The notes under the pieces were generated by a model. That model saw only the letters and a list, made by a program, of their open reading frames with translations. It had not been told where the DNA came from and searched no databases. Of a stretch of DNA of 58,211 bases, positions 2,081 through 30,151 are shown piece by piece. The DNA is from Octopus bimaculoides (lineage: Eukaryota), in NCBI RefSeq assembly GCF_001194135.2, contig NC_068983.1, forward strand, positions 119,038,935 to 119,097,145, in the 5' to 3' direction. The first letter of the stretch is position 1; each line of letters starts with the position of its first letter. Position numbers and translations under genes: made by a program.

Positions 2081-3641
2081 GCCTTTTCTTTATTCGGCAC
2101 TACGGCCACAACACAGAGGGGGACATTACTAGGACAGACACAACATTACAATGTGGACATAAAATATAAAACGAATGACAATGAGATGTTATATAATGAA
2201 GAAATGAAATGGCTGCATGGGCCCCATTCCCAAGCAGTGCCATTTGAACGTTTATATACACTATTTCTATTTACCATCGTTCACTTTTTCTATTGTTTTT
2301 TTTTTTCTTAATTATCTTATAGTATGTTCAAATTTTACAATTTTTCTCTCCGTCTCCTTGTTTTTTGAATATGTCACAAAATTCCATTTGTTTTTTCCTC
2401 TTCTTAGTTTTTTCTTTTCTTCTTCCACTACTGGTGTCTTTTCCTCTTCAACTCTAAACAATCTCTCCATTTCACCCTCGCACAGTTGCACTCCCGAATC
2501 TTTTTCCTTCGTTGGGACAACCGGCGTCATTAGCACTGTTTCCTCCTTCTGTAAATACACCTTTTCAATTGCATTCTCTATGTCTTTCTCCACCACCTCT
2601 TCGTCTGCCTTCCCTCTGGTCACAGCTTTCTTTTCCACCTCTTCTTTTTTTCTTTTTCTGGTTCTCTGGTGGCGGGCTCGCTCTTCCACTTTTCCTTCTT
2701 TTTCTTTCCACCACCGTGAATCCCTCCTCCGTTGTATTTTCTTCCATCTCCACCTGTACTACTTGGTTCGTGCTCTCCTGCTTCTCTGTCGGTTCTCTCT
2801 GTGGGCATTTCGCCTTCATGTGGCCTACCCTCCACTTTCACTCTCAATCTTAGATCGTCGGGCAGCACTATCTCATCATCGATTCTATTTAAATCTTCCA
2901 CTGTTGCCTGGATAGTGAGCTCAATCCCATATCTCCAGTAATCCATACTTTGTGTTCTTGTGGCCGTCAATATTTTGGCCTCTTCCTTCGTATTGAACAT
3001 TATTGCTGTCATCAGCCATGTTTCTTCTAGCTCTGGGGGTACTTTGCCTACTCTCACTTTGGCCACACGTTTGCCACAGTACGAAGGCAAAAACACCCAC
3101 TCCTCCGATCGTATTGCCTCCGTGGAGTTCTTAATTGCTTCCTCTTCTGTTGCAAAGCGTACCTCCACAGTGGCATACTTTCTTCCTCTTGTTATAAATG
3201 TTGTTTCTCTCCTGATATTTTTCAAGCATTCCTCAATCTCTTCCACTGTCGCGAGATCTATCTTTTTTGTTGCGATGTTCATGGTTTAAATACCACAGTT
3301 CTTTTTCTTACACTGCTTATCAGCTCCGTAGGCGGTGTCAACTTCAACGTGTCTCCGACTTTCGCCAGCAACTTCTCACATTCTTTCATTTTCTTCGGCT
3401 CCACCATAATTTCAATTGTTTCTAGTTTTCCCTCCTCTGTTTCTCTTCTATTTGCGGCTGCATAACTCTGGCCACCCACTGGCACTTTCTCCATTTTCCC
3501 CCAATGGGAAGAGAGAAAAAACAACAATTCACCAACAATCAAACAGCAATAATGAACAACCAATTTTTCAACAACAAATATTCAACGTTGCAATTTACTT
3601 CAAAAAATCTCCGTTATCGACAACTCAACTCAAATTTATCG
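2081..3641 (-). mobile_element. ORF1(gag)-only non-LTR retroelement, copy 1 (HAL1-like)
   Basis: On the minus strand: T-rich 5'UTR, disrupted ORF1, short 3'UTR, AATAAA (2089-2094). Flanked by ACTGCTACTCA (2070-2080) and ACTGCTACCCA (3642-3652), a putative TSD. No RT or endonuclease sequence. Confidence 0.75.
2312..3494 (-). pseudogene. Frameshifted L1/Tx1-type ORF1 (gag-like, RRM-like region, remnant zinc knuckle, Glu/Lys-rich tail)
   Basis: Pieces MEKVPVGGQSYAAA..., ...TFITRGRKYATVEVRF...LPSYCGKRVAKVRV...VEGRP, GHMKAKCP and an acidic/basic tail. Colinear homology with the 22.8-23.8 kb ORF, which has a full CCHC knuckle. Confidence 0.75.
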
Positions 3642-3952
3642 ACTGCTACCCAACACTCCTGCCATGGCCAGACTACCTCTATTTGTATGTCTTGGGAGAT
3701 CCTACTTCTTCGCCTGGGGGCATCGACACAACATATATATATATAAGGATGTATACAAAACTAAATCCGTAAAAATGTCTATATATATATTTGTATGTTT
3801 CTGTATGCATTTATACATGTATATGTATAAGTCTCAGAAGATATTAGAATAATGGAATAAAAGTTAGTCATAATAAGAGTTCTCCCAAAATCTATTTCTT
3901 TAATTTTTAACTACTGTTTCTGGCACACATATTTACGCAATTTTGATTTTGA

Positions 3953-4036
3953 AGTATTTAAAAAATTATTTGGAAATTATAAATAGAAATGATAGATTCG
4001 GACTGTCTGTATTTTAAAACCACGAATCAAAAAAAA
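3953..4036 (-). repeat. Right arm of ~85-bp inverted repeat pair (partner 1063-1148)
   Basis: AAAAATTATTTGGAAATTATAAA...GATTCGGACTGTCTGTATTTTAAAACCACGAAT. Confidence 0.8.
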
Positions 4037-5508
4037 TGTCGTGTGTCAAATTTTTTCTCCAGAAGTTCATGGCTTCATAGGAATAAGCGTGGAAAACTGC
4101 ATCAAGATAACTAATTTTCAGATTTTTTACTTCCATTTTTAAAAAATGCAAATTTTGTGAATGAAACAAACTAGATCCTGAATAACAGGGGGCTGATTTT
4201 GTAAATCAAACTAACTAGATCTAAGTATAGTGAATACCATCCTCCACAATTTGCTACTTATATGAAGTACATATGTATTTCAACAATTTCTATCAAATAC
4301 ATTCTCTTTCTTGAGCATAAAAATCCTCTTCCTGGGTGACAATAACTTATATGTCAGATTGTTGCACAAGTTCTAGCTGTTTTGATAAAGGAAATCGGAA
4401 AGGCTTTAAATGAGTTCATCGTCATTTACGTGTACCAAAGAGCACTCTTTCGATAGGCAATACGTTGATCTCATAAGTGTCGCGTGGTGGAAATAAATGC
4501 AATTACCAAACTTTCAATTCATTATTTCGTTTTTTTTTTTTTGGCATTTCAATTTGTACATCTGTACTTCCGACTGCGCACAAGCGCATATGTTAAATGA
4601 CGTCCTTTACATTTTAATCAATGCTGATATCAAAATAACTAGTATAAAAATATTTTCGGGTGGGGGGTGCATTTGTGACTCCAAGGACCAAAAAGAGGGC
4701 CTTTGACAAAAATGGGTTGAGAACCTTTGATGTAAATGATTGCCAAGCATTAAAAGACAAAAGTACTCTTATGAAGAAACTGATCTTAATTGTGAAGATT
4801 CAGTCATTCAAAACTATGTAGTATGTCCAATTCCATACGGAGCCTTACATAATCTACCGATGTTTTATTTATTTATTTATGTATTTATTTATCTATTTAT
4901 TTTTTTTCTTTTAAATATAAATGCCAACCACTTATGAAATCCATTCGAATATTGCGAAGAGGTTATCAACTGTCTAATCAAATATCTATAGAGGGAATCT
5001 TTTCCCTTGCTTCCGACTAAGAAGCAAAGCCCTTCTCCTCCAGTTAAACACCCTCATCAACAAACTGCCAGTAATAAACAAAATCTTGAGTCTGATCGTA
5101 GATTTAAAAATTGTTTATATCATAGCATTACTTCCTTTTCACTAACCCAGTTATTTCTTATCTTATCTCACAACGAATTTTCTACCTAGAAATTTTCTAT
5201 CTCTGACGCTCAAGTAACCCAAGTAAAAATTCTTGATATAATAATATTCCCAACACAATTATCTCTGCGGTTAAACTGATCATAGAAATGAGACGCGATT
5301 TTGAACTTGTTTACTCGCACTGAAATTAAGTCAAATACTTACGGGAATACTACACTAAGTTTGAAAACGTGTCTAAGTGAACTATATAAACATGTTTCTT
5401 TTCTTTTTTTTTTCACTCTTTTACTCACAAAAAACACATCATTTTTTTGTAGTACGAGAAATGGAAAGCTGTGATAGTCATATTTTTTCAGTAATATTAT
5501 TAACAACA

Positions 5509-5725
5509 AAAGGCGGTGAGCTGGCAGAACCGTTAGCGCATCGGGCAAAATGCTTAGTGACATTTCGTCCGTCTCTACGGTCTGTATTCAAATTCCGCCG
5601 AGTTCCACTTTGGTTTTCATCTTGCGAGGTCGATAAAATAACTACCAGCTTAACACTGAGGTCGATGTAATCGACTTATCCCCTTTCTTCGAAATTGTTG
5701 GCCTTGTACCCCAATTTGGAACCGA
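5509..5725 (+). mobile_element. tRNA-derived SINE, family A
   Basis: AAGGCGGTGAGCTGGCAGAACCGTTAGC head, GTATTCAAATTCC B-box-like motif and GGTCGATGTAATCGACTT body, shared with more than 15 copies or fragments in the window. Confidence 0.85.
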
Positions 5726-6924
5726 TATTATCAGCAACAAGAATATGAAATGAAAATTTTTTGGTCTAGGAAACAAAACCACTTTGCAGTCGTTGGAACT
5801 TGCCTTTGCGTTTTGTTTTTAGAACAAAGTATTTTTGTTCTTAGAATAAGTACTCTACTGTGTACTTGTTTACCCATTTCCATAACCCTTCCATCGTCTC
5901 TACTTTATATCAGACAGCAATCTAATATCTTTTATATGCTAATCCAATTTTCAACCCCACAATCAATTTTGGAAAGCATTACTTGAAAAGCAACATTCTT
6001 CTACCATATTCGTAAAGTTTCTTTAATAAGTGATACCGAAAAATTAATCCATCAAAATATATTACAAATCATTAGTGTACCTCTGTCATACAGTTAAATT
6101 CTTCTCATTCTTCACGTTTGTACATCTTAAGTTTTGAAATACTGGCTAGTTTGGGAATATTTAATCTACGCTTTGTTTGTGTCACTCGGTTAGAGTCGAA
6201 GGAGAAAGATATCAAATGGATATTTTATCTAGATAACTACGTTAATATGTTGCTTGCTAAAAACTGATCAAATAATTATCTACACGCAAAAATAGCGTCG
6301 TGGAGGTATTTTTTGAAAATATCTTTTATATTACATCTACTAAATTCTATAAGCATGCACACTTTGTGTGTAACTTAACCTCTTTAAACAATATAACAAA
6401 CTATGTTAAGAAAAAATACGAAGAGGGATCCCTGTTGCGTCTTCAAGTGAGGTATGAAGCATAAAGTATGTAGGGCGAGGGTAAATGTGAAGTGTAATGA
6501 TTATAGGGTTCACGTGAATATTCATGAAGTAAATGAAGTGAAACAAATTTGTCAGCATTCTCGAAGTAATAGTTTTGGAGATTCACTATATTTATTAACT
6601 AAACACAATTACTTGGGAATAAAATTTGAATCTGCGAACCTGGTATCATTTAATTATCCTTATACTATTCTTATCTTTGGGATAGGTATGAACATAGCAA
6701 CACAATGATTTCTAGCTAACAATCTGGAAGCATTTTAATAAATTAAGTTAATACTTTCAAAAATAACATCGAAATTAATTTTCTTTTAAAAGTGACGATG
6801 GATGTAAATCTAAAATGTTTTCTGTAACCTTTGATATCATTGATTCATAATCTAATTAATATAATTTAACAAACCCTGGTCATAACTGATCTTATATTCA
6901 TATTTGTTATTTTTTACGCTTTGA

Positions 6925-7070
6925 GTTAAAATCCCTGTGAGTTCAACTTTGCCTTTCATCACTTCGGAATCGACAAGACAAAGTTGCTGTAAAATACTGG
7001 GATACTTCTGATCCGTTAACCGTATTCTCTCAAAAAATTGCTGGCCTTGTGCGTAAATCAAAAATAATTA
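6925..7070 (+). mobile_element. Degenerate SINE family A fragment
   Basis: TCAACTTTGCCTTTCATC...AATTGCTGGCCTTGTGC matches the family A body. Confidence 0.6.
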
Positions 7071-7199
7071 TCTACAATGCTAAATGTTTTAGAGAAAGTA
7101 TTAATGTCACATTACGTTTCATTCTCTCTTCCAAAAATATATGCTCTAGGATTCAAATAAAAGAAACCAAAATTTTTCCAATTCTTAACGTTATAGCTG

Positions 7200-7335
7200 A
7201 ACATCACCATCATTATCGCCACCACGACCACAACCACCATCATCATCTTCATCACCCCACCCCACCACCCTCAGCATCATCATCATCACTGCACCCCTAT
7301 CATCATCATCACCACCACCACTACCATCGTCTCGC
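7200..7335. repeat. (CAC/CAT)n degenerate trinucleotide low-complexity tract
   Basis: Directly visible. Confidence 0.85.
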
Positions 7336-7964
7336 TGCACTTCACACACAGTAGACATCATCAGTAGCTTTCTACAACAGTTAAGTGACTTTACAACGTT
7401 GCTGATTTTTAATTATATTCGAGACGAGTTGATGTCACAATTCGTAGAGGCTGCCTTGAAAAGGACGTCTCATATAAATGAAAGTACTGATGGAAAGAGG
7501 CTGGGTTAGTTTAATACAGCTAATATTTTCTTTAAATTCCTCCAGCTTTATTCTAGTAGGTATCATGTTTTCAAGTAGAGGTTCTAGAGTAAAGCGGTGT
7601 TAACGTAAAAATGTTAGGCATGTCGTATAATTCAAAGACGTGAGAGAAATGTGGTGATGAAGAGTGAGAACATGACTAAAAGCATGTGTCAGTACAAACA
7701 AGACTTTGCTGGAATCTAAGAACTGTGATGATATACAAAAATATATAAATAAATTTTCTTAGCAGTAACAAAACAATAGAATAATGAAAAGGATGACACA
7801 GCTGCATGTTTGACTACAGGAATACAGTTTCCCTGATGTTATGGAAAATGATCAAATATATTATTATTATATTTATGAATTTGTTTTGCAAGATTCCTGA
7901 TGTGAAATCGTGTGTTGAGAACGATAGCGATATTGTTATATGTATATATATATATATATATATA

Positions 7965-8135
7965 GTGAGAATGTACAAAAAAAAAACAACAAAAAAACAA
8001 AAGACGAAGAAGGGTGTGTAAACAACAAACAGATGTATTAGTTTAACGCTCGGGAAGTGAGAAAGTCTTTTACGTTTCGAGGCTGCACTCTTCGATAGAA
8101 AGGAACACAGGAATAAACAGGGAGAGAAAATAAAA
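7965..8135 (-). repeat. Dispersed repeat resembling a Penelope-like element terminus (partner 36925-37085)
   Basis: Reverse complement matches 36925-37085 (GAAGAG...CTCGAAACGT...CACTTCCCGAGCGTTAAACTAATACATCTGTTTGTTGTTT). Confidence 0.65.
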
Positions 8136-8157
8136 AAAGGTTTAGTGGCTAGCGATC

Positions 8158-8203
<46 letters not shown>
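8158..8203. repeat. (GATA)n microsatellite
   Basis: Directly visible. Confidence 0.95.
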
Positions 8204-8661
8204 TTTATATATTCATATATTTTAGCAAGCTCACTGGCTAATCGCGACACTAATGTCTGTTCCTGCACTTTTTCTATATATCACTGGCAAGGAGATGAGT
8301 CGCGTTCGAGCGTCCATCATTGACATAGCCAAAGAAGGTCGAAATCACATGATCTGGTGATCTCGGCACTGGAGATGACAGGGATTTAAAAATATAAACA
8401 AGAGTGCATTTTGCACCGAAAACCAATATAAGAGTTTCTCTCATGGTATCTACCACAGTATAGTTTGTTCTAACAGAACATCCACATTTAAATGGGGATA
8501 AATATTTCCCTTAGTATTAATACTGCCTCTGTTGCTAATATATTTTATTAAATGAGTCAGTGCAATCCAAACATAGTAGTAATCTATGTTGGCAAATAAT
8601 AAATATAAACAGTTAGCAAAGAGGAGTAAGCTAGTTTGTCATGAAGAAGAGGTTAAGTCAG

Positions 8662-8695
8662 ACCTATCTTTCTCCTTTAAAGGAGAAAGATAGGT
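8662..8695. repeat. Perfect 34-bp spacerless palindrome
   Basis: ACCTATCTTTCTCCTTT|AAAGGAGAAAGATAGGT. Confidence 0.95.
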
Positions 8696-9624
8696 TGAAG
8701 CGTTGTACAGAAAGTACTGCTGCTCGTTCTACATCTATATTTGATCTGTTGGCTAAGACTATGTAGCACAGAGACCACAAGATGAGAAGAGAACGAAACT
8801 AAACCAAGTTCATCGTAATGTTAAATGCTACCCAGTATGGCTATTAGGCAACTAAATAACTACATTTTCAGGCCGTGTTAGTGTGGATGTCTAAGTGTAT
8901 GTTATTACTTTAATGAGCTGAAAATATTACTGCATTCTGTGATACTACCTAAAGTCTTTGAAAAGTGGAGTATACAATCTATTCTGGAGATATCATGATA
9001 CAGTCGGGGAATAAAAAAAAATTCCAAAAGAAAAGCTTTCTATATGATAGATATTTTTGCCGAAGTAATGAGGGCGAGAGACTGAAATATTTGACCTATG
9101 TAATAAGAAGACCCCGCAATTAATTAGCACGGGTGCTATGCCAAGGTTTCCCGATCTCTAGTCCATGCGGTAGGCCCGTGAACTTTTCAGGCACCTGAAG
9201 ATACAGGATAACCGCACGCACCAGCGGAGGGAAGAGCATTGATCAATGTGGTGTTGGTGGTGGTCCAGTTGGCAGAATAGAATCGGTTATCCAGAGAGGA
9301 ATGTGAGACTAAAGTAATACATTATGATATAGACCAGACATTGGCAACATTTATTTTAGAAGCGAGCTGGGACGCACTATAAAAACGTTGAAGGTAATTT
9401 TTCGTTAGGCGAGCCACTTATGCATGAGAATACATATATAAAACAAAGCAAATTGAAATTGGAGGACAAATTATGTTTAATACTGGATTGAAATTAGGAT
9501 ATATAAGGATTTAAAAGCACTAAACATTGGTGTTGATTGTTGTGCAATCTCAATTAAAACAACATTACTTAATTACACATACACTCACACATACATACAC
9601 AGGCATACATCCACCCCACCATAT

Positions 9625-9642
9625 ACATATATATATATATAT

Positions 9643-9710
<68 letters not shown>

Positions 9711-9711
9711 G
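9625..9711. repeat. (TA)n microsatellite abutting the 3' end of an RTE LINE
   Basis: Directly visible. Confidence 0.9.
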
Positions 9712-10750
9712 TCATGACGAGTAAACTCCAGTCTCGTTGACTAGTGTCCTTTATGCTTCCCTGTCCTCCATAAACGTTGCAACACAGTTTTTTAAGGTTT
9801 GTCTTCTCGCAGCTATTTCACATATGTTCGACAAGGTCTGCTTCTCTTTCTTTTATCATAGTAATAGTTGAAGTACGATTTCATTTTTTCTTCACCAACT
9901 GTGTCCCACAAACTTAAGTCTGCGCTGTTGGATGGTTTCGATTAAATGTTGCTCCCAAGAAACATTCTTAACCTTCCTTAACACCTTGATATATATATTC
10001 CATTTCGTCTGCTTTCTATCACTTTCGTAAATGTCCAGCATCAAGATGCATATATTAATATACTTTCTAAAGTCGTTCTAAAAAACTGTTTCGAGGTCAT
10101 TTGATAGATTTGACTCAGATATTGTGAATATCTTACTAGTTGACATCCTTACCATTTCAATCCTTACTTCATTGTCTCCCTTTGAGCATTTTCTCTACGA
10201 TATCAAAAATATTTGGAGTCAGCACATTTCCGGTTTGCACCCTTTGATGATATGTGTTGTTTTTAGTTGATTGATAATCATAGACTCAGTCTTATCGTCA
10301 TTGACATGTCGTATCTGTTTTGCAACGTCTTCAACTTGTTGAAATAGTAGTGGAGCTTCCTTGATAGTATTAAAAGTAAGAGCTATACTATCTATATGAT
10401 TTGCACCAGCTATAGTCATTGCAGAATGACATCTGTTTTTTGGGATGGGAAACCATTTGGAAGCCAATTTCTTCATATGGTATTGCAAATTGTAAAGGCC
10501 ACAAGGAACAGGAAAGGTGCAAAAGTGTCATCTTGTAATCCCGCCAGGATCTCAAAGAATTCTATATAAACATCAAGTGATAAAATTTAAGTAACAGTAT
10601 CTCTTTGTAGAGAGTCTTTAAGGTGCCAGGCATACCATATGCTCCAAACATCTATATTAGCTGAACGCTTTGCTAAACTCTACAAAGGCTCTGATCTTTT
10701 ACATCGTAAGAATCTATGATAATGTTGATCTTGCAGGACGGAAACCAATT
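9712..10750 (-). mobile_element. Degenerate RTE-clade LINE, 3' portion (RT and C-terminus)
   Basis: Minus-strand translation gives FVEFSKAFS (~FVDFxKAFD), FGAYGMP, AGLQDDTFAPFLF (~GVLQGDTLAPFLF), IDSIAL...HVNDDKTE, KNVSWEQH, RRLKFVGH and MEDREA, with stops and frameshifts. Confidence 0.8.
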
Positions 10751-10854
10751 TGATCGATTTCCGAATGGTTGTGTATAGGAGCGTATTCCGAAAAACCTAC
10801 AAGCATTTTGTTGTAGATTTAAGAATAATAGACAAACTAATGTCTGTATGCATA

Positions 10855-10961
<107 letters not shown>

Positions 10962-11484
10962 AGAGAAATATTGAAGTATATTAAAATAGTTTTATATAAT
11001 TACTCTGCATATTTGCATTCACCACAGACTAAAAAGGAAGGAGACACTAAGCTGTTGCTTGACTTGCTAAAAATATCAGCCAAATTAACCTGAAATAATA
11101 TCCTATCGATTTTTTCTCCTTTCTCTTCTTTTTATTTTATTTTTTAAGGGATTAAAGGAAAAAGATATTGGAGAGTATAGTTACAGATATATTACAGCTA
11201 GTAAAAAAAAATGATAAAGCCTGTGCCAACGCTACAACGTGTTTGATTATTGGGCCCTCTCCGTCAGAGCTGACATAGAGCTAATCTGCAGCAATAACAT
11301 TTTTATGCATATTTATATATTTAGGACATTTTAATTTATATCCGCTTAGCTTAAAAGTGTAAACATGTACTACTCGTATGATACGTTTCGGCATCAATAA
11401 CTACAATTTAAATTTAATCCAATGTAATTATTTAAACTTGACATGTTTTATGAATATTTCTTAGTAAATAAATTCTATTTATTG

Positions 11485-14725: not shown

Positions 14726-15638
14726 NNNNNNNNNNNNNNNNNNNNNNNNNNNNNNNNNNNNNNNNNNNNNNNNNNNNNNNNNNNNNNNNNNNNNNNNNNN
14801 NNNNNNNNNNNNNNNNNNNNNNNNNNNNNNNNNNNNNNNNNNNNNNNNNNNNNNNNNNNNNNNNNNNNNNNNNNNNNNNNNNNNNNNNNNNNNNNNNNNN
14901 NNNNNNNNNNNNNNNNNNNNNNNNNNNNNNNNNNNNNNNNNNNNNNNNNNNNNNNNNNNNNNNNNNNNNNNNNNNNNNNNNNNNNNNNNNNNNNNNNNNN
15001 NNNNNNNNNNNNNNNNNNNNNNNNNNNNNNNNNNNNNNNNNNNNNNNNNNNNNNNNNNNNNNNNNNNNNNNNNNNNNNNNNNNNNNNNNNNNNNNNNNNN
15101 NNNNNNNNNNNNNNNNNNNNNNNNNNNNNNNNNNNNNNNNNNNNNNNNNNNNNNNNNNNNNNNNNNNNNNNNNNNNNNNNNNNNNNNNNNNNNNNNNNNN
15201 NNNNNNNNNNNNNNNNNNNNNNNNNNNNNNNNNNNNNNNNNNNNNNNNNNNNNNNNNNNNNNNNNNNNNNNNNNNNNNNNNNNNNNNNNNNNNNNNNNNN
15301 ATATATAAATCACGATTTATTCGCGATCAGTTGTTCAAAAACCGAGGTACTTCTGTATATATGTGTGTGTGTGTGTTTATACACATATACATACATATAT
15401 AAGTACATATATACGTAAATGTGCGCGCGTGTGTGTGGGGAGGTGTAAGTATGTGTATGTGATGACCACACAAGAGATAATGAAAAACCGAGGTGAACCT
15501 GTATCATTAACCCTAAAGGAAAAAATAATTAACCGTTGTTGTAAAATCAGTTTCGTCATATTGAAGATGCAGTATTGATCGAAGAGTTAGGATAGGAATT
15601 TACCATTCCCACTCTGTCGGACATATATTATGACTATC

Positions 15639-19928: not shown

Positions 19929-19961
<33 letters not shown>

Positions 19962-20937
19962 ATCCAGAAAATAGTAAAATTAATCAAAATCTTTTATTAG
20001 ATGTTCTCATTTGTTTGGCGTCGTTACAATTTGAAAGAAAGATTTCCAACTAAGAAGTAACGCATTTAGGAAGCGGGTGTTCAAGAAGTTTAATGAATGT
20101 CGGGATTTGTTGTCAAACTATGATCAAGATAATTCTTTAGTAAACCTATAATACCTTTAGGTCTATGCGCTTCCATTCAACAAATATCTAGGAAAATAGT
20201 AATAATATTTACAAAACACAATAAAATTAACTTGAAATACATTATAATTGTGCGAGCGAAACTACGATTCAGAATTGATTACCTGTCAAAACCATTTAAT
20301 AGTTGCTTTTATCGCTCTTGGAATGTATGAACATTTCAAAGTTTCATTCGTTTCCTGTATAAATTTGAGAGCTTATACCTAGTCAAATTAAGTGTACTAG
20401 AGATATTTATAGACTAGATAGTAATTCAGAAGGGTAAATTTTGGTGAGCGAACTACTTCAGCTTAGATGTTTTGATTTGTAATGTTACGTTATTCGATGG
20501 GGGGGGGGGTCATTTCCGCCACCACCGCCAAAGAGCTTCTGTCAATTCTCTTTTATCAAGTCAACATTTTTTTATATCGCACATCGTTAGTTCAAATCAT
20601 TAATATCTACAGGCTGTCGCTAAACTAGGCAAGGCTCATCAATAGTAAGTTGTTTTGTCGACTTCTCAAGTTTCACTTCAACGTCGGAAACTAGACACGA
20701 AGGATTCCTCACTAACTGTCTATATATGTGGTCGACATGTACTTTTATCATGACTTCCAAGATTCATGACCATCTTACTCTGTTATCTACACTAACTTTC
20801 ATTTCATTGGCAAATGTTTTATTTTAAAATGTCTTAGTTTCTTACACTTCAACAATATTACTTCGGGAATTCGTTTTCATTACTCATCTCCCAGTAAGAC
20901 ACAAATGGCAAACTTTACTGGAGTCCTCGGTAACAAC

Positions 20938-20939
<2 letters not shown>

Positions 20940-20972
<33 letters not shown>
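20940..20972. repeat. (ATT)n microsatellite
   Basis: Directly visible. Confidence 0.95.
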
Positions 20973-20973
<1 letters not shown>

Positions 20974-22578
20974 TTATATGTATAAGAAAGCTGAGAAAGT
21001 TTGAGAGATGTATAATATCATACTTCCAGCTTAGACACCTGACACCAAACATGAAGAAATTTTATAAACAGAATTCTTGAAAACACTCTAAAACGAGGAT
21101 ATGGTAACATATTCCCCATTAAGAAGACCATTGCCATTAATAACTCACAGCTCGAACTTCAGATTCGCTACAGTTGCTAGGATTCATACCCTCTAATGCT
21201 ATTTTATAGTGACCACACATCATTGACATAGATAAATGTTACGCTTCTTTATTCTGAATAGTAATGGATCGTACAAGGGAAAGCTGTAACCTTCGTTATA
21301 GTAGTATTTGTATATCTTGTCTCATGTAGCTTCTTTATATACATGCATAAAGATCCAAAAGCAAAGGCCGTCTGAACTTGCAGACAAACTTTCAATCGAC
21401 AAACGCTCAAACGAATTATCCTCTCTGATTCTCTTACGTCTAGCTATGTAGTACTTATTGCACTGAATTAGTAAGCTTTATAGCAACCTTTCCTGAATCC
21501 ACTCATCTCAGGACCTTTCATATCTTTACTGTGTCTTGTTCATACAAATTCAAATCACGTACTAAACAATTTACTTATTATTTCCTTAGAACTACAATAT
21601 ACTAGATTACTAAAATCAATCTAATTTTCAGCCACTTTGAACGCAATGATCTGGGTGAGCCTCATTCCCTAGAAATTCATGTTCTTTTTTGGAATAAGTA
21701 ATAAAAAAAAGTAAAGAGCGGGTAAAAAGTGTTGACACTAACAGATCTTAGTCTATGAGAAAATACGACATCCTCTCGATATTTCTTGTTTCCCCGTCAT
21801 AAATCCCGATGAAATACATAATGACTACTGCAGATACAAATCGTACAGAATCGATTGTGGACGAGTGAACCTACACATAATTTTCCCTCACAGACTCTAT
21901 CGGAACTTATGATCTAAACATTACAGCTTATATATGGTACTACAGTTTCTATACGAACTCAGCAAGAACGGGATTCTAGTATTTCTAAGCTGAAAATTAT
22001 ATGAATTCGTCTATTTCAATTTGTTTTCATTATAATTATGAATTCGTATTACTATTACAACCCTGCTTACATCATGTGAAGCATGTGATGGCTCATATAC
22101 CGTACTAAGTATCATGGTATACTCACTACGTAGGAACATTCCTTCACCAAGTATATATTTTTCCCTAGTATAAGCTATTATACATCAAATAGATGCTTAA
22201 ATATGAATTACCCGCAGGGTGTTATTTAAGTAAGAAGAAAGTAAATGAGTAGATAAATACCATAAACGTAAGCTTGAAGAATAAAATACAATTTGAATTT
22301 CAGCTGAAGCCATTTTCTTCGCCTAAATTTACTTCATTAACGTATTTGAGAAAATAATTTACATCTTGTCTATTCTTAAAAGAAAATGTTTAACTTAGTT
22401 AATTGGTGTGAGTTTGGTAGTTGACAATAACTAGAAGAAGGATTGATCTTTAAGCTTTCACTCTTAGTACATTCCATGATGACTTGAAGCATAAAACATT
22501 GAAAAGATTTCATGTAAAATCCATTTTTTCCATGAATATATTATGTTATAAAAGCAAGGCAGCGAGCTGGCAGGAACG

Positions 22579-24240
22579 CCAGTTCGCTTCCGGTGTTATT
22601 CAAGGTGTACGTGAGTCATTTTGACGGTATTTTCAGAGTGTTAACATCGTTTATTTTTTTAGATACTTCGTTAATTGTTTTTGTGCTGCTTTGCAGCAAT
22701 TTGTTTGTGCTTTCTCTCCTCGTTTGAGGTGAGTTACCTATGAATAGAAAGAACAATTTATTTTATTCAGACTTTAGTAGGTCTGAATTTTCATCGTCAG
22801 AAGGGGGAACTCGTAAGAGCAGTGGAAAGAATGGATGGTCAATTAAAGAAGAAAAGTTTTGCGGAAATGGCGGAAGTTGCGAATAAGGAGGTGGATCTGT
22901 CAATGTTGAAAAGTTACGAGAGGATGGTACACAGAGAAGGGGGCGACGTAAAGTTGCCGCCCACCCGGGAAGTAATAAGATATGCAGGAAAGAACTATTG
23001 TGCACAAAGTATATTCTGTAGGAGATAAGAGAATTGAAATTGTATCAGTGGAGAAAATTGAAAAAGGCCTTGAAGTCAATCTGGCAAAATATAACATATC
23101 TTGCCAGAGGAAGTCGATATGGAATAGCGGAGGCTCACTTTAGAAAGGGAGCAAAGGCAAAGCAACACTCAACAACCCCGTTAAGGGCGGAAAGTGTGGT
23201 CCTCTTACCCACATACCTTGGAAAGAGAGCTTCCAGGTTTAGGGTAGAAGGGATCCCACTCGAAATAGATGTGACTTGGGTAGCGGCGGATATACTTCTA
23301 TGCAACGAAGAGGAAATAGCCGTTCTCCAAGCCACGAAAACAAACAACCAATTGGAAAGGACAAACGTTGGATATAATTATACAAAGTTCAACGGAAAAC
23401 CTAGAAAAAATGGTGGAAACAGTAACAGTTGGAGATGCGATGTTAAGAGTCAGGATGGAGGGCAGAATCCCTCGATGTTTCAAATGTGGCCAAAAGGGGC
23501 ACATTAGAGTGAACTGCCCTTCACCGACTGAGAAAAATCAGGAAGATGTCAGGAAAGAACCAGAAAATGTATAGGAGGAAACACAAATAAACGACGATGA
23601 ACCGTGGAAAATGGTAGAAAAGAAAAACCAGAGGAAAAGAAAGGTCAGACCCCAACTCACACCCACCACACCCACGCCTTCTCAGCCTGACCTTCCCCCT
23701 GCAGACACCAAACCCACCCATTCCCTTCCGACACAAAAACAACAAAAAAAGGCACTGACACACAGGTACCCACAAACTTCCCCTCTCACTGAAAGTTGGT
23801 TTTGCATGTATGTGATTTAGAGGTGCAGATGAACTAATTAACAAAGTAACAAGATGGAAAAACAGTGTTGATTCATGTGGAAAGAAAGACTTTAAGTATG
23901 TTAGTATTGAAGAAACAGAATAATGAAATAGAAACGTATAAAGGTGGGTACAAGTGCTAGAGAGTGAACTATGACATGAAAGGGTTACCGGATGATATAT
24001 AGTATGAAGAAGATATAAAAGAATATGGACTGGATATTTTGGAGGGTACGGAATTTTAAGAAAATAGGAAGTTAGAGAAGCTACTCAGAGGTGGGGCGAG
24101 TTGCTTCATTTTCATTTTTCATTCATGCTTTCATACGCTCTCCTGTGTTTCTCTCTTTTTTTTCCTTCCCCTTGTTTTCTTTCTGCACATGTTTCTGTAT
24201 TGTTCCTTCTATGTTCGCCCCCAGTAGGTAATAAAAAATT
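22579..24240 (+). mobile_element. ORF1(gag)-only non-LTR retroelement, copy 2 (HAL1-like)
   Basis: Flanked by CAGGAACG (22571-22578) and CATGAACG (24241-24248). Contains T-rich 5'UTR, ORF1 with CCHC knuckle, 3'UTR and an AATAAAAAA end. No RT. Confidence 0.85.
22822..23823 (+). pseudogene. Frameshifted L1/Tx1-type ORF1 with CX2CX4HX4C zinc knuckle
   Basis: KSFAEMA; TYLARGSRYGIAEAHF...LPTYLGKRASRFRV; MEGRIPRCFKCGQKGHIRVNCP; Pro/Thr-rich tail; stops and frameshifts. Confidence 0.85.
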
Positions 24241-25889
24241 CATGAACGTTAGCACAGCGGGCGAAATGCTTATCCGTATTTCACCTGTCTTCACGTTCTG
24301 AGTTCAAATTCCGCCGAGTTCGACTTTGTCTTTCATGCTTTCGGGGTCGATAAATTAAGTACCAGTTGCGTACTGAGGTCAATCCAATTGACTGGTCCCC
24401 TCCCTGAAAACTTTCGGGCCTAGTGCCTAGAGTAAAAAAGAATATATATGTTATAAAAGCGACGACGAAGTATAAGTAACCGCAAAAGAACCAAGCCTTG
24501 AACAGATTGATGTCCAAAGAAATATTACCATGTAAGGAATCTCAACAGCTGAGAAGATATAGCGTATAATTCAGCCTCTTTACATTAGTGAGAAAGAATT
24601 CCTTTGTACAAAAATAATGTATTGCAAATTTTAAAATGTTGATAGATATGAATGACAACTAATATTTCAGAAACAGATTAATTTAAAACATATATTCTAA
24701 TTAATGTTGTATGTTGATAATTGATAAATGTTGTAATCAAACAGCAAAAGCTCATAAACTGGGATTAATTCCCGATTCGATTGTGATAAGCAGTGGAGGA
24801 ATTAACTTCAGCCCAAGAAAGGATGACAGTCTACCACAGGTAATAAAATATATGAAGAGCTGCCACTTATTATGAATATCTAGATGCAATGAGATATATA
24901 GCATTCATTGTACTAGCCAAAGGAACAACAAAATATTAAAACAAATCCATAACACATGAGCCGTTAATTTGAATCATTGTGCATCAAACTGATAATTATA
25001 TAAAACATTATTTTTTTGAAGACCAAACATTTTTAACGTTCACTGTAAAGTAATTGCACAGGTATTTCGAGAAACTGCTACGTGTTAAGCTAGATAACGC
25101 TTCGTTTTTTCATCCTTTCAATATAGAATTTCAAGTGTCGTTACATTATCTTATAAAACGAAACATTTGTTTCATTTTCATGTTCTATCTTTTTTTTTCC
25201 CCTACTGAAATAGCTACGAAAAGAATAAGAGGGGAAAAGACATATTCAGTTGATAATCAGTGTTTTAGCTGCAGTGAGATGTAAGAGAAAGTATATTTGG
25301 GGCTCATTAAAAAGAAAAAAAAGCATCGGAATTTTATATCTTTGTTGCTTTTCTTTTTAATTGTGCGAGTTAATCTCAAAGGGCGAACATTTGATGTACT
25401 GAACTTCAGACAACAGATATGTTGAACAGAAAAAACAAAATATTCTTAAAATTTTCCCAATGAATCCAATTAGTAAATAAGTTATCAGTTTCTTATCCAT
25501 CAGCTGAGTTACTGATTACAGACTAAAACAAGGGTTAATTTATTATTTTCAAGAAGCATGTATAGTAAGTCAGGAAGCAACGAATTCTTTACAAAATAAT
25601 TACTCAAATCATTTGTAGAGGAAGGAGTTAAAGCGAAAGATTTTTTATACTGATAGCTGGTTCAGGGAGAAAAAGAACATCTCAAAACAGCAATAGACTT
25701 CCAGTTGGCTGAGTTGTTGGATACCTTCATACAACTTGAAAGTTCGGATTCAGACCTCAAAACTGATATTTTATTGCATGTATGGCAATATCTCTGAACT
25801 GCCAATGGTTCGGTTCATACAGCTGCAAAGAAATAGCTTGGAGAAGTATAGCACTCCGAAGTAAGTTATGGGGGCACGAATATGTTTTA

Positions 25890-26254
25890 TCATTAACCTG
25901 TTTCAGTCATTTGACTGCAGCTTTGCTGGAGCACCGCCTTGAATGAGTTTAGTCGAACAACTCGACTCCAGTATTTGTTTCTTTTAAAAACTCTGGTACT
26001 TATTTTAGCAGTCTTTTTTTCTGAACCGCTCAGTTACTGAAACGTAAACAAACCAACACTGGTTGTCAAGTCGTTGTGGGGAACACACATATATTCGATG
26101 GGTTTCTTTTAGTTTTCATTTACCAAATCGACCCACAAGGCTTTGGTCGACCCGCAGCTATAGTAGAAGACACTTGCCCAGATTCCATGCAATGGAACTG
26201 AACCCAAAACCATGTAGTTAGGGAACAAACTTCTTATCACGTAGCCACGACTCC
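25890..26254 (-). mobile_element. tRNA-derived SINE, family B
   Basis: Colinear with 13550-13959; minus-strand head GGAGTCGTGGCTACGTGATAAGAAG...GGGTTCAGTTCC. Confidence 0.8.
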
Positions 26255-27299
26255 TCATAATCGATGATTTATGTTGACTTCCACTGTTGAGCTCAGAATA
26301 ATGCCACATAACTGTAGCGGTAACAGAAAACCATTTCTCTAGAGCCTTCCTCACATCATTACATCTTCAGTGTTTTTATAAGCACTAAAGATTACGTGAC
26401 ATTAATATGTTTACTTAATAGTATCCGTTAAGTTATTTTAACTTGTAAAGTCTTCAATGCTTTACGTTCGAATTCTCAGAATTCTTAATGTTAGGTAAGT
26501 TCTATTTTTACCTTTTAACTTTAGAAGTAAAATGAGTAGACGTTAAACATATTGTAAGAGTTAAATACTCGTAAATAGTAACGGAAACATCCGGCTTTTA
26601 ATAACAAAACACATAGAAATGCACAACAGTAAACACACTCATTTGAATTTTGAACATCCAAAATATTGGTTTCTTTTTTCATTAGATACAAAGTCTGTAA
26701 TTTAGACAGAAAGTAGAAACAAGATGTGACATTCATGACTTTCCATAGAGTATTGATGGTAAGGATAAAGAGAAATCACTTCAATCGCGAATTGAAGAGG
26801 AGGGTGAATTTCGTTTGCAGAGAATTTACCCTGGTTTAATATCGTTCGTCTCGAGGTACCCTGAGTTAGCGAGAGAGGCTTTGTGTAATTGCTTCACTTG
26901 CGAGAAATAACAATCACGTCTCCATCAAGTCACACTATACCTTCTTAAGAAAGGTAGAACACATGGGACAATGTAATCACTGATATACAAAATGATGGGA
27001 TGATCGTGGCTGGTACACATTTGATCGGAGTTGACTTGGAGATAAACAACAACAACAGCATCAAATGAAACAATGTTTTATTATATTTTGCTCAATAAAT
27101 CCTCCAGTATGTCATTAATATTATTTTATTGATCCTAGAGAAATGCAAGGCAAAACCGATGACAGAAAAATGTTTACTTCCTACGTAGGGAGAGCCGAAT
27201 AAGATACAATAATAAATTTAGTCAGGTCTTATATATTATCGGGGTTTTTTTTTACCATTCTCAGACACCATATATTGGGATAAGCCCATACATTTCGTG

Positions 27300-27450
27300 A
27301 GAGAATCTAGTCGTTTAAATTGACCCTAGTATTTCACTAGTATTTTGTTGATCGAACCCGGAAAAGTAAAAACCAAAGATGATCTCGGTAGAATTTGAAG
27401 CCAGTACGTAAGACCTTAAATATTGCTAGGCATTTTGCCCGCTGCTCTCG
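27300..27450 (-). mobile_element. Degenerate SINE family A
   Basis: Reverse complement resembles the family A head and body. Confidence 0.5.
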
Positions 27451-27720
27451 CAGTGATACTAATCTTTTGGCTCTGTTACTAACTATTGAGAAACTAGCCA
27501 GGGAACCTTTAGAAGCTTACTCAATCTGCTAGAAGTAGCAGCCATAAATCTTTTAAACTACACATTGCCATTTGAGAAAGGGGCACTTCGGATAATAAAA
27601 TCTAGTGCAGTATACCCAGCAAAGATGGGATGGTAACAACTGGAATGTCTCCAATTATAAATCTACCAGACTAGGTGATAAATAACAACTGCTACTAAAT
27701 ATTGATTCCGCAATTCGATA

Positions 27721-29924
27721 GCATTTCATCAGCATTTCGCACGGTTGTTTGGGACGAGTGAAACGTTGAACCATGGGGGGGGGGCCTTAACGGATTTCCT
27801 GGCCGACGGACCGCGACTCTCGGCGAGCGAGGCGAGGCGCTGTGAAGGGTCGATCCCAGCTGCGGAGGTCGAAGAGGTGCTGGCCGAATGCCCACGGGAC
27901 AAGTCGCCGGGGCTGGATGGTCTGCCCTACGAGTTTTACAGTAGTATGCCGGACTTGTTTGGACACTTGCTGGCTTGTGTGTACACGAACTGGCAGCAGA
28001 ATGGGAGAATTCCCAGCTCTGTGAGCCGGGGAGTGGTGACACTGGTCAGAAAAAATCCGAGCAAGGGGAATAATATTAGTAATTTTAGGCCCATAACTCT
28101 ACTGAATGTAGAGTTAAAGATTTTGGCCAAGGTGCTAGCAAAAGGGGTGACGGTTGTCGCGGAGAGACTTGTCGGGAAGGAACAGACTTGTACCATCCCT
28201 GGAAGGTCCATCCAGGACAATCTTCATCTCTTACGCTACACCTTAGACAGGGTGGGTAAAGTTTCCGGTAAAGGTGGGGCACTGGTCTACTTAGACCAGA
28301 GTAAAGCGTTTGACAGGGTTGACCATCGGTACTTGGCGGCAGTCCTTGAGGCGGCGGGGCTGGGCCCAGATTTCCGCGGCTGGATCAAGGTCATTTACGG
28401 TGACATCAAATCCACAGTTCAAGTGAACGGTTACCTGTCGAAGCCGTTCGAGGTCAGGCGTTCAGTTCGTCAAGGGTGTCCCTGTCTCCTCTTCTGTATG
28501 TATTAACTCTTGAGCCATTGCTGCGGAAGTTGGAGAATTTAGGAAGCGCCTCGAATGAAATCGGATGTGGTAAGAGTGTCTCTGCGTACGCAGATGACAT
28601 CACCATCACCGTATCCAATATGAATCAGCTACCTCGTATAGCCGAGGCAATCAGAAGATACGAGACGGTGGCAGGGGCAAAAGTTAACAAGGACAAGTCC
28701 ATTGGTTTGCGGCTCGGCACCTGCAGCAGCAAGCCGATAGCGTCCCGTGTCATTAGGCACTGGTCAGATGGTCCTGTTAAGTTGTTTGGAGTTTCGTTTG
28801 GTCCAGGCTCCCAGACGGAGAAGAATTGGAGTGAGGTGACGAGCAAGGTAGAAACGCTAACACGGATTTGGTCTGGGAGGGCGCCCTCCTTGAAAGGAAG
28901 GGCAGAGATAATACGTTTATTGCGTCGGTTATCACCTACCACCTGACCGTCGTCCCTTGTCTTGATTTGTGGTTAAACAAGCTGGTTCGAATTCTCTTCC
29001 GCTTTTTGTGGAGGGGAAAGCCGCTTGTGAGATGCTCCGTGTGCTGTCAAAAACCGTTAAAGGGTGGCCTAGGGATGCCTTGGTTGCTGATGTGCAAACA
29101 TGCACTAAGACATCGCTGGCTTTACCTGGATTGTGGTCAGGTGTGGAATTCGCTCGCACGGGAGTTCTTCCCACGACCAGCCTCATTGGAGGAATTCAAA
29201 CCCAGTTTTATTAAAAGACCAAAAATAACTGAATATCAAAAGGAATGTTGGCAGGAACTTGCGCTAATCCACAGGGCGGGTAAGGCCGGCGGCGGGAATA
29301 CCACCTCTGCATTTTATAAAGGCGTTGGTAGAGTTCAAAAGTGACGACGTTCTAAGAGAGATGCTGGGGCTCGATGAAAACCAGCTATCCAATGTGTTTC
29401 GGAACACTTTCAGGTCAGGATATTTGGATAATTACCAAAGTTCCCTGACCTGGCATTGTTTCAGGAATGCATTACTCGTTCACGATAAATTGTCTTGGCA
29501 CAGAATTTCAGTGCCACCCTAATGTCCAAGATGTGGGGAAGATAGGGAAACTATCCTAAACGCTCTTGTACAATGCAACCATCTTTCGAAGATGACAATT
29601 TACGTAGAACACGTGTTGTCACATCTGGGAAGAGTACAGCTATCGGCTGAGTCTGTGATTAAGAATGTACCACCCACCGGACTGTCCAAGGAAGGTGAGG
29701 ATTGTTTTCTGTGTACAGTCGCAGTTATGAAAGAGTGTGCATGGAGGACCAGAATGCAAGGTAAGAAGTCAGGGGTCTTCATCTCCGGCCCTGGAATGCT
29801 TTACTACTTCAGTTATCACCTGAAAAGCAAGATAGGGCTGGAGAAGAGGCACCTGTCTAGAAGTATATATGAGAAAAGATGGAAGGATGTACTAAGGAAG
29901 TTGGGAGTGAGTGTCCCTACTTAA
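27721..29924 (+). pseudogene. Frameshifted ORF2 reverse transcriptase (no endonuclease domain present)
   Basis: KSPGLDGLPYEFY, FRPITLLNVELKILAK, DQSKAFDRVDH, SVRQGCP/LSPLLY, AYADDITI, GGLGMP, CPRCGEDRETILNALVQC; several frameshifts and stops. Confidence 0.92.
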
Positions 29925-30151
29925 TCTACCACGAGGGAAAAAAGGATGTAGCTGTTGGACAGTAGACCGACAAGAAAAAATGTAAAAGAAATCTAAATTT
30001 TTAAATCATATAAATCATCTATTTTTAACTTGATATATTTTTGTGTTAAGAAAAAACGGACTGAAAAAAACTCGCTGAGTATTTCTTTTTAATGTTTTGT
30101 ATTGTCCTGTATTGTCCTTCTATATCAGATCTTATTATCATAATAAGGAAA
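27721..30151 (+). mobile_element. 5'-truncated L1/Tx1-type non-LTR retrotransposon (ORF2 RT, zinc-binding region, 3'UTR)
   Basis: GC-rich block; coding homology begins at AFHQHFARLF; 3'UTR ends TGTATTGTCCTTCT...AATAAGGAAA. Confidence 0.9.

Follow-up and report, generated by a model that had tools for sequence, protein, structure and literature searches.

HAL1 ("half-L1") elements are non-autonomous retrotransposons that encode only the protein from the first open reading frame (ORF1p) of a long interspersed element (LINE) and depend on the ORF2 protein (ORF2p) of their parent; they had several origins in mammals, as summarized in PMC5753468 (which cites Smit 1999 and Bao & Jurka 2010). HeT-A and similar elements of Drosophila are also ORF1-only (their Gag protein has a CCHC knuckle) and rely on a related ORF2; there have been repeated losses of ORF2, ORF1-only lineages can give rise to further such lineages, and the elements are arranged in head-to-tail arrays (PMC13534243). 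Here we analyze a stretch of 58,211 nucleotides from Octopus bimaculoides (NC_068983.1, positions 119,038,935 to 119,097,145; hereafter, the window). It contains two elements with a gag-like ORF1 and no ORF2 ("gag-only" elements), which we call gag1 and gag2, as well as a LINE fragment that encodes part of a reverse transcriptase (RT). A sequence-only reading of the window had proposed that these form a two-component system, in which HAL1-like gag-only passengers are mobilized in trans by an L1/Tx1-type RT through a shared 3' tail. We think it probable (roughly 75%) that the window holds dead copies from three tiers of one community of octopod retrotransposons: an autonomous L1-group LINE, ORF1-only families, and short interspersed elements (SINEs).

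3' tails that are shared between a LINE and its passengers are known from other systems. In stringent LINE/SINE pairs, such as eel UnaL2/UnaSINE1 and zebrafish ZfL2, only the 3' tail is common to the partners, and its stem-loop is recognized by the ORF2 protein (PMC4176376). Similarly, a plant L1 lineage (maize/sorghum) has a conserved structured 3' end that is also found on its SINE partners (PMC3747384). The Tx1 clade (Tx1L of Xenopus and its relatives) has an L1-group RT, an apurinic endonuclease (APE), and an ORF1 with RRM and CCHC domains (PMC5203782). In the classification of Khazina & Weichenrieder, as it is given in PMC5203782, at least one RRM together with a CCHC zinc knuckle defines a Type I ORF1p. 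L1-Tx1 is annotated as a repeat class in coleoid genomes (PMC8967140), and in the papers on active octopus LINEs that we searched, only RTE and Dong are named as full-length elements, along with abundant SINEs (PMC9115989). None of the papers that we searched describes ORF1-only elements from cephalopods.

How the octopus elements compare to known systems

We compared the window to loci from O. bimaculoides (L001, L002, L006, and L007; GCA_001194135.2), O. sinensis (L003; GCA_006345805.1), and Argonauta hians (L005). In total, 156 kb of sequence was available for the searches for tails and for array brackets.

Like HAL1, the octopus elements have a 5' untranslated region (UTR), a complete ORF1, and a LINE-type 3' end, and they are multi-copy with a constrained ORF1. 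So the label "HAL1-like" fits the class of their probable mode of action (ORF1-only and LINE-dependent), but they are not members of the HAL1 family: they have no Transposase_22 domain, and their terminal sequence is AATAAAGAAAAG or AATAAAAAATTCAT, with no poly(A). The source of HAL1 is vertebrate L1, whose ORF1p is of Type II (coiled coil, RRM, and C-terminal domain; Transposase_22) and whose 3' end is a relaxed-type poly(A). In contrast, the octopus elements belong to a mollusc lineage of the L1/Tx1 group and have an RRM-like region, a CCHC knuckle, and a specific tail with a hairpin and AAUAAAGAAAUC.

As with HeT-A, TART, and TAHRE, gag elements are found in head-to-tail arrays in octopus (at L002, L006, and L007). 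However, the Drosophila elements belong to the Jockey clade, are specialized for telomeres, and have a host function, whereas in octopus, the arrays are internal to chromosome-scale scaffolds (one is at 51.5 of 94.6 Mb) and dispersed single copies occur as well.

The resemblance to stringent LINE/SINE pairs lies in the tail. In octopods, a tail with a covarying hairpin is found on LINEs, SINEs, and gag-only elements; that is, SINEs carry a LINE 3' tail, and there is a conserved 4-bp stem-loop (absent from the window's RT copy). The classical passengers are non-coding SINEs, while one class of octopus passengers keeps ORF1. Finally, repeated insertions beside one 13-nt sequence at two loci recall the target specificity of Tx1, but most of the octopus copies have unrelated flanks, so target specificity does not appear to be strict.

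A short 3' tail is shared by the RT element and both gag elements

Read directly from the sequence, the three tails lie where the sequence-only reading had placed them, and the spacing before AATAA (20, 20, and 19 nt) is as it had claimed. The RT element has AATGTTTTGTATTGTCCTGTATTGTCCTTCT, 20 nt, and AATAAGGAAA (30091-30151, plus strand); gag1 has AATGTTGTGTCTGTCCTAGTAATGTCCCCCTCT, 20 nt, and AATAAAGAAA (2150 to 2084, minus strand); and gag2 has ATGTTTCTGTATTGTTCCTTCT, 19 nt, and AATAAAAAA (24189-24238, plus strand).

We compared 77-nt tails by their local alignment scores. As controls, we used 2000 dinucleotide shuffles as well as 126 non-overlapping AATAAA-anchored sites from within the same 58-kb window. 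The RT and gag1 tails have a score of 30, which was reached by just 0.05% of the shuffles, and the RT and gag2 tails have a score of 29 (reached by 0.35%). The best of the AATAAA-anchored controls scored 23 against the RT tail, 24 against the gag1 tail, and 26 against the gag2 tail. Tails from other elements gave similar or higher scores: gag1's tail scores 33 against the RT element at L002 and 30 against the Argonauta LINE, and gag2's tail scores 27 against the Argonauta LINE and 42 against the tail of a SINE in the window (45048-45095). Across four RT elements, the scores of the gag tails exceed all of the controls. The concern that the motif might be no more similar than shuffled T/G-rich sequence therefore does not apply to the RT-gag1 and RT-gag2 comparisons.

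The likeness is confined to about 60 nt. A blastn comparison of the DNA of the three elements found no match, even with E up to 10 and a word size of 7, because the shared tail is too short and too diverged for BLAST. This bears out the earlier statement that the remainder of the 3'UTRs does not obviously align. Overall, the tail that is shared by the three elements is real but short.

gag1 is a multi-copy family with a fixed junction and no ORF2

The window's copy of gag1 (2083..3738, minus strand) was delimited by aligning it to the copies at L001, L002 (copies a and b), and L003. It is decayed, with its ORF1 broken up into three or more frames. Its 5' end is at 3738, a start that is shared with copy a of L002, and its 3' end is at about 2083, directly after AATAAAGAAAAG. 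(If a 13-nt repeat at 3654-3642 is the target-site duplication (TSD), then the 5' end would be at 3641 instead.) We set the 3' end of the family directly after AATAAAGAAAAAC because a truncated copy at L006 that is flanked by a TSD ends there; this agrees with the 3' end in the sequence-only reading. That copy is just 144 bp long and 5'-truncated, with a perfect 15-bp TSD (AGTCCTCGATGCATA); truncation with a TSD is the signature of target-primed reverse transcription.

In what remains of ORF1 (2312..3494, minus strand), there are an N-terminal region, an RRM-like core, and a basic region, along with a CCHC knuckle that is damaged and a C-terminal domain that is truncated. The remnants match the family's consensus ORF1 in four tblastn pieces at 73-91% identity. 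The family alignment shows that the window's copy has lost 32 bp within the CCHC knuckle and about 190 bp from the C-terminal part of ORF1. The tail (2083..2157, minus strand) has a TGTCTGTCCTAGT..GTCCCCCTCT box and a UGGC-cguagu-GCCG hairpin, with a predicted energy of -3.8 kcal/mol, and then AATAAAGAAAAG.

Beyond the window, we found seven copies of gag1 at five loci in two species of Octopus: one at L001, two at L002 (a and b), one at L006 (a fragment), and two at L007, all from O. bimaculoides, and one at L003 from O. sinensis. These are 74-88% identical to the window's copy at the nucleotide level. All copies have the identical ORF1 stop, a 3'UTR of about 230 nt, and the same junction with the tail, and in none of the copies that we examined did we find a match to APE or RT after ORF1. 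Because copies that differ by 12-26%, and from two species, have the identical junction, the architecture without ORF2 must have been inherited and propagated. This is not what would be expected of single-copy deletion derivatives with variable breakpoints, which the sequence-only reading had raised as the outcome that would undo it.

A majority consensus of seven gag1 copies restores an ORF of 397 codons. Pairwise ratios of nonsynonymous to synonymous divergence (Ka/Ks) range from 0.25 to 0.66 and are mostly around 0.3, at Ks of 0.14-0.69; pairs from different species are included. Since decay after insertion drives Ka/Ks towards 1, these values indicate purifying selection on ORF1 in lineages from which ORF2 was already absent.

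At L007 (6472-8388), two adjacent copies of gag1 are circularly permuted: positions ~896-1831 of the family are followed by a junction and then by positions ~273-898, so both copies break at nearly the same position of the family. An N gap lies inside this arrangement (7037-7358). It could be a unit that was cut from a tandem array, or it could be an assembly artifact.

gag2 is a second ORF1-only element, inserted into a SINE

The window's copy of gag2 is decayed but full-length (22579..24243, plus strand; 1,665 bp). It was inserted into a SINE, with the TSD GAACG. If 22579-24243 and one copy of GAACG are removed, then the rejoined SINE aligns from end to end with three other copies of the SINE. 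Because joining the flanks restores the SINE, gag2 is a discrete insertion of 1,665 bp. (The sequence-only reading had proposed looking for TSDs, absence of ORF2, and constraint on ORF1, and all of these were found for gag1; for gag2, we have the 5-bp TSD.) The interrupted SINE has its own TSD of about 13 bp (ATGTTATAAAAGC, at 22545-22555 and ~24452-24465). As gag2 splits a SINE that has its own TSD, the SINE was inserted first and gag2 second.

The ORF1 of gag2 (remnants at 22831..24059, plus strand; read in three frames) is interrupted by an in-frame stop and by three or more frameshifts. Nevertheless, it retains an intact CCHC knuckle (~23473-23523; Pfam zf-CCHC, E = 2.5e-6) and recognizable remnants of the C-terminal domain. 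By tblastn, these remnants are matched by the consensus ORF1 of gag1, by the ORF1 of another gag family at L002 (copy c), and by the ORF1 of the Argonauta LINE. The gag1 and gag2 proteins are just 33% identical (E = 1e-21), so we consider them to be two old families.

The tail of gag2 (24189..24243, plus strand) is supported by its alignment scores and by a match to the covariance model for the tail (24203-24249, E = 1.5e-4; see below), but the hairpin of the window's copy is weak. Elsewhere in O. bimaculoides, we found gag2-like proteins (P0126-P0128) and gag2-like copies. One of these, at L006, is diverged and internally deleted but carries a canonical tail. Logan contigs for P0128 (L008-L010) contain decayed gag2-like fragments with no recognizable tail.

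The RT element and its relatives

The RT element (27700..30153, plus strand) is a 5'-truncated and frameshifted copy of an L1-group LINE, with only the RT and the C-terminal Cys-motif part of ORF2. Pfam's RVT_1 is found in two frames, and the ORF2 of the Argonauta LINE matches in four tblastn pieces in shifted frames, at 44-64% identity, beginning at residue 2 of the RT. With the same query, there was no match for APE, and the copy has no ORF1. We also looked for a TSD and found no convincing one. The closest relative in the database is an Argonauta protein (60% identity) with RVT_1 and zf-RVT, and relatives carry RVT_1 together with PF13966 and PF03372. In a search of PDB, the RT family matched human L1 ORF2p with E = 7e-43 versus E = 1e-22 for R2; because L1 ORF2p scores better, we assign this family to the L1 group. 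The tail of the RT element (30091..30153, plus strand) has a TGTCCTGTATTGTCCTTCTAT box and a terminal AATAAGGAAATC but no GC hairpin.

The origin of the gag ORF is suggested by the Argonauta LINE (L005). This element is near full-length: a 476-residue ORF1 is directly followed by APE and RT, and the gag-homologous ORF lies directly upstream of, and overlaps, the APE-RT ORF2. Its ORF1 has the same order of parts as the gag ORFs: an N-terminal "F/Y-A-x-A" motif, an RRM-like core, a CCHC knuckle, a basic stretch, and a C-terminal domain. By tblastn, this ORF1 matches gag1 at 31% identity (E = 2e-16) and also matches gag2 (E = 2e-21). In O. bimaculoides, element L002d is internally deleted, with the truncated N-terminus of ORF1, APE, the C-terminus of the RT, and then the tail. 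The similarity of the sequences, along with their shared order, shows that the gag ORF is a homolog of the ORF1 of an autonomous L1-group LINE.

We then considered the domains of the gag ORFs. Pfam found only zf-CCHC in them, with no RRM and no Transposase_22, and a sequence search of PDB with ORF1 found zinc-knuckle peptides only. The AlphaFold model of the window's 220-residue gag1 ORF has a mean pLDDT (predicted local distance difference test) of 59, but the core (residues 70-155) has pLDDT of 75-86. The modeled core has the order beta-alpha-beta-beta-alpha-beta, and its top matches in PDB are RRMs (E = 6e-3 to 7e-2). This fits, but does not prove, a resemblance to Type I ORF1p (RRM and CCHC).

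Our first profile for ORF1 was overwhelmed by K/E words of low complexity, with just 4 matches; a profile of the core alone gave 9. Protein searches with the gag ORF1 matched only Octopus proteins, all of which are annotated fragments of gag-only elements. (For one protein, P0001, we found no placement in any contig.) The NCBI gene models LOC106878453, LOC106877848, LOC128249544, LOC106871568, and LOC115232245 are pieces of decayed gag-only elements. For LOC106871568 and LOC128249544, the translation is not colinear with the locus, so these models appear to be spliced.

The tail and its hairpin are found on other LINEs and on SINEs

The canonical form of the common tail is a short covarying hairpin followed by AATAAAGAAATC. 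Among RT elements, the tail of L005 ends in GGCC-cttgt-GGCT AATAAAGAAATC, that of L004 in GGCC-cttgt-GGCC AATAAAAGAAATC(ATT)n, and that of L002d has TGTCTGTCCTAGTTCGTCCCCTCTATG..TCCTA-tttat-TAGGA AATAAAAGAAATT. Among the gag elements, the hairpin is TGGC-cgtagt-GCCG in gag1 and GCCC-cttct-GGGC in the gag2-like copy at L006.

SINEs in the window carry the tail as well. A SINE-type tail at 31869..31916 (plus strand) has the canonical hairpin GCCC-caugu-GGGC and then AATAAACAAATAAAT, with 47.7 bits from the covariance model. A SINE copy at 45048..45230 (minus strand) comprises the core and a canonical tail ending in GTCCCCTCTATGTTGAGCCCCCTGTAGACAATAAAGAAATAAAT (48.3 bits); its tail (45048-45095) is of the GCCC-catgt-GGGC form with two mismatches in the stem, and no hairpin is predicted for it. 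The dominant SINE family in the window has a diverged version of the tail, ..UGGC-cuugu-GCCA AAAUUUGAAAC (..TGGC-cttgt-GCCA AAATTTGAAAC as DNA). The SINE that is split by gag2 is of this family (3' part at 24244..24448, plus strand; the 5' 23 nt at 22556-22578), and other copies are at 5510-5731, 33436-33848, 37667-37799, 39434-39748, 39980-40149, 46525-46755, and 53064-53227. ARAGORN found no tRNA in the window because the heads of these SINEs are too diverged to be called.

The copies at 33436-33848 and 39434-39748 are head-to-tail SINE pairs, with the second head directly after the A/T-rich end of the first tail. Given these pairs, and that the tail of gag2 directly adjoins a SINE, our data suggests that insertion beside existing tails is common for elements with the common tail.

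Several analyses indicate that the hairpin is conserved. First, when the 23 nt that precede the A-box are folded with RNAfold, 7 of 10 families have a predicted hairpin directly 5' of the A-box, with family medians of -3.5 to -6.9 kcal/mol, versus a median of 0 at 147 control AATAAA sites (Mann-Whitney p = 8e-5). (A simple stem finder gave ambiguous alternative stems, so we relied on RNAfold, controls, and pair counting instead.) Second, in an alignment by MAFFT, which is blind to structure, 92.5% of cells form pairs, versus 58% in shuffles, and none of 500 shuffles reached the observed value. Three of the four pairs of the stem vary on both sides, and if the register is slid, only 17-47% of cells pair. 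Third, a covariance model of the hairpin and A-box has 32 matches in the 156 kb, with 14 of these in the window, and in the alignment that was fitted to this model, 87.9% of cells pair. In the MAFFT alignment of all 23 tails (A3), the hairpins of gag1 and L002d are out of register, so pairs were counted in the subset with the same register (A5) and in the model-fitted alignment (A6).

Arrays and the 13-nt repeat

Directly after its tail, gag1 in the window is followed by an extension (1996..2082, minus strand) that has the 13-nt repeat GCTGAGTAGCAGT at its start; the 5'UTR of gag1 contains this repeat too (3654-3642). The extension is 94-96% identical to 16076-16158 of L002, a region that follows the tail of the RT element with which a head-to-tail array ends. 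The extension is not part of the retrotransposed unit of the L006 copy. A reading of the 13-nt repeat at both ends of gag1 as the mark of a long terminal repeat (LTR) element was rejected because the repeat is so short (13 nt) and because gag1 lacks a primer-binding site, pol, and LTRs.

The 13-mer GTTGAGTAGCAGT, or a close variant of it, lies directly after the gag1 tail in four loci (in L003, the match is looser). Its copies or variants are at 3654-3642 and 2082-2070 of the window (minus strand), at ~9122, ~11008, and ~16073 of L002, and at ~7739 of L007; it follows tails in the window, four times in L002, and in L007. At L002, copies a and b of gag1, copy c, and the RT element (d) are joined tail-to-13-mer. 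The 13-mer marks every tail-to-head junction in the arrays at L002 and L007, which mix gag families and the RT element. At L006, a gag2-like tail is directly followed by the 5'UTR of another gag element.

The window's gag1 also shares its brackets with the L002 array. The 99 nt upstream (3738-3640) and the ~82-85 nt downstream (2082-1996) are 87-96% identical to the brackets of the array (7246-7341 and 16076-16158 of L002), and the outer flanks of L002 are unrelated to the window's. In the 156 kb, we found no uninterrupted copy of the bracketing sequence (the 5' 99 nt joined to the extension). The junctions fit a scenario in which elements re-insert at a favored site within a host repeat of ~180 nt and generate a 13-bp TSD, as Tx1-like elements would. 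They also fit end-to-end template jumping by the RT.

Both sites are bracketed by inverted repeats: 1064-1148 and 3953-4035 of the window (86%) surround the gag1 insertion, and ~7101-7170 and ~16160-16230 of L002 surround the array. The inverted repeat of one locus has no relationship to that of the other. The arrangement recalls Tx1L, which sits inside the DNA transposon Tx1D, and this is possibly a coincidence.

Weighing the explanations

The sequence-only reading proposed two components, but at least three tiers are needed to account for the elements that carry the tail: the RT-encoding LINE, the ORF1-only elements, and tRNA-type SINEs. The first tier would be an autonomous L1-group LINE with an ORF1 (RRM-like region, CCHC knuckle, and C-terminal domain) and an ORF2 (APE, RT, and Cys motif), which would be present in the window only as the 5'-truncated RT fragment. 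The second would comprise two diverged ORF1-only families of about 1.6-1.8 kb, each with a 5'UTR, a complete ORF1, and a 3'UTR of ~200-250 nt, from which ORF2 was precisely lost. The third would be tRNA-headed SINEs. Members of all tiers would carry the common tail: a pyrimidine/G-rich box, a short hairpin with a covarying stem, and a terminal AAUAAAGAAAUC, which is sometimes followed by (AUU)n. Our analyses show that the ORF1s are homologous, that the architecture without ORF2 is fixed, that there are insertions with TSDs and 5' truncation, that ORF1 is constrained, and that the tail is shared. From this, we infer that the tail would allow the ORF2 protein of the L1-group LINE to mobilize both the SINEs and the RNAs of the ORF1-only elements in trans. 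The ORF1-only elements were presumably selected to keep their own ORF1p so that it would coat or chaperone their RNA in cis.

Several observations weigh against this explanation. The tails of gag1 and gag2 have a score of only 15 against each other, which was reached by 62% of shuffles and is at the level of chance, so the proposed common motif holds up between the RT element and each of the gag elements but not between gag1 and gag2. No hairpin is predicted for the window's RT tail (0.0 kcal/mol), and the covariance model does not detect this tail at E ≤ 1. The stem comprises just 4 bp, and about three or four lineages, with few independent events, account for its covariation. The architecture of gag2 is known from two copies, of which one is internally deleted, and the evidence for this family is thinner than for gag1. 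The sample of copies is small and, as it was gathered via annotated gag proteins, biased, and there are assembly gaps in several of the loci. The Ka/Ks values are rough, as they were computed by the simple Nei-Gojobori method from a small sample of decayed copies. Finally, every copy that we examined is dead, and neither an intact ORF1-only master nor an intact ORF2 from Octopus was recovered.

Among the alternatives, the strongest, to which we give somewhat less than an even chance, is that the driver was one or more other L1-group subfamilies with the shared tail and that the window's RT copy is a bystander. Besides the missing hairpin, the tail scores point this way: gag1's tail is closer to the RT element of L002 than to the window's RT element, and gag2's best matches are SINE tails. 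On the other hand, the window's RT tail still beats all of the controls against both of the gag tails, and, given the age of this copy, it may just have decayed. This alternative would refine the three-tier explanation rather than contradict it. Either way, because the window's RT copy is 5'-truncated and frameshifted and has the least canonical tail, it is probably a dead relative of the driver and was not itself the driver.

It is improbable that the common tail reflects descent only, without being recognized by an RT, and that the elements multiplied by tandem or segmental duplication of DNA. The head-to-tail gag arrays at L002, L006, and L007 could have arisen by amplification at the DNA level. 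But these arrays join different families (gag1, the family of L002c, and the RT element), which duplication does not explain, and there are dispersed copies with TSDs and unrelated flanks. Furthermore, the tail is the only conserved part of elements whose 3'UTRs cannot otherwise be aligned, it is also found on SINEs that share nothing else with the LINE, and its stem covaries.

We consider it very unlikely that the gag-only loci are dead-on-arrival copies of LINEs that lost ORF2 by independent random deletions and never propagated as ORF1-only elements. Internal deletions are indeed common, as in the window's gag1 (32 bp and ~190 bp), the gag2-like copy at L006, and the RT element L002d. However, copies of gag1 at six loci, with 12-26% divergence, share one junction of ORF1 stop, 3'UTR, and tail; a 5'-truncated copy with a TSD carries the 3'UTR that is specific to gag1; and Ka/Ks of around 0.3 indicates selection after ORF2 was lost. 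For gag1, this idea is already largely refuted.

That the gag ORFs are domesticated host genes or gag fragments from LTR retrotransposons or retroviruses is hardly credible: although NCBI annotates several copies as "uncharacterized protein LOC..." and the CCHC knuckle weakly matches retroviral nucleocapsids, a homologous ORF lies directly upstream of APE-RT in the Argonauta LINE and in L002d, the copies are all frameshifted, multi-copy, and with TSDs, and we found no LTRs, protease, or integrase.

More tentatively, the three-tier explanation could be extended. Octopods may harbor one or more old ORF1-only lineages of the L1/Tx1 group that are under selection, that have diversified into families with as little as 33% amino acid identity, and that, together with the SINEs, form a three-tier parasitic network based on a stringent tail, with mixed-family arrays, as a mollusc parallel to HeT-A/TART away from telomeres. 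We view this broader idea as doubtful. Under it, the arrays would form either because the RT jumps from the end of one template to the next or because elements re-insert at a preferred 13-nt site, and the ORF1 protein of the passengers might also serve the RNAs of the SINEs.

Gaps and other features of the window

With a GC content of 36%, the window is AT-rich, and it contains six runs of N. The gap at 14726-15300, which has (CA)n at its left edge and a TA-rich microsatellite at its right edge, is 11 kb from gag1 and 7 kb from gag2. None of the elements or reading frames discussed here crosses it (the ORFs that span it are runs of X only), so continuity across this gap is irrelevant to our findings. 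A tblastn search of the whole window with LINE ORF1, APE, and RT queries found only three LINE-related pieces, none of them near this gap. A second gap (1386-1979), with (TA)n at both edges, begins 17 bp past the last base of the extension downstream of gag1 that is shared with another locus.

The only match in an Rfam search of the window was a full-length match to 5S ribosomal RNA (RF00001; 13962-14082, minus strand; 53.6 bits, E = 2e-8), 650 bp from the gap at 14726. It may represent a gene for 5S rRNA, a pseudogene, or a repeat that derives from 5S. The window also contains an imperfect palindrome of ~750 bp (42943-43687; 74% self-complementary), with fragments that are 77-87% similar to it at 30734-31000, 31476-31815, 54424-54616, and 54873-55032. 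These look like a family of foldback repeats or of repeats similar to miniature inverted-repeat transposable elements.

Implications

A practical consequence is a warning for annotation: several "uncharacterized protein LOC..." models in Octopus are fragments of these elements.

About half of octopus genomes is repeats, and these are dominated by SINEs. If an L1/Tx1-group LINE does drive both the major SINEs and the protein-coding ORF1-only passengers by means of a single structured tail, then the likely engine of the SINE expansion would be identified. The tail would also provide a defined RNA motif for the recognition of templates by an L1-group RT, which is an open point in the evolution of L1 from "stringent" to "relaxed." The octopus elements look like an invertebrate counterpart of the mammalian "half-L1," and if our explanation is correct, they would add an invertebrate case to the few known ORF1-only parasites of LINEs (HAL1 and HeT-A) and would bear on why ORF1 is retained after ORF2 is lost.

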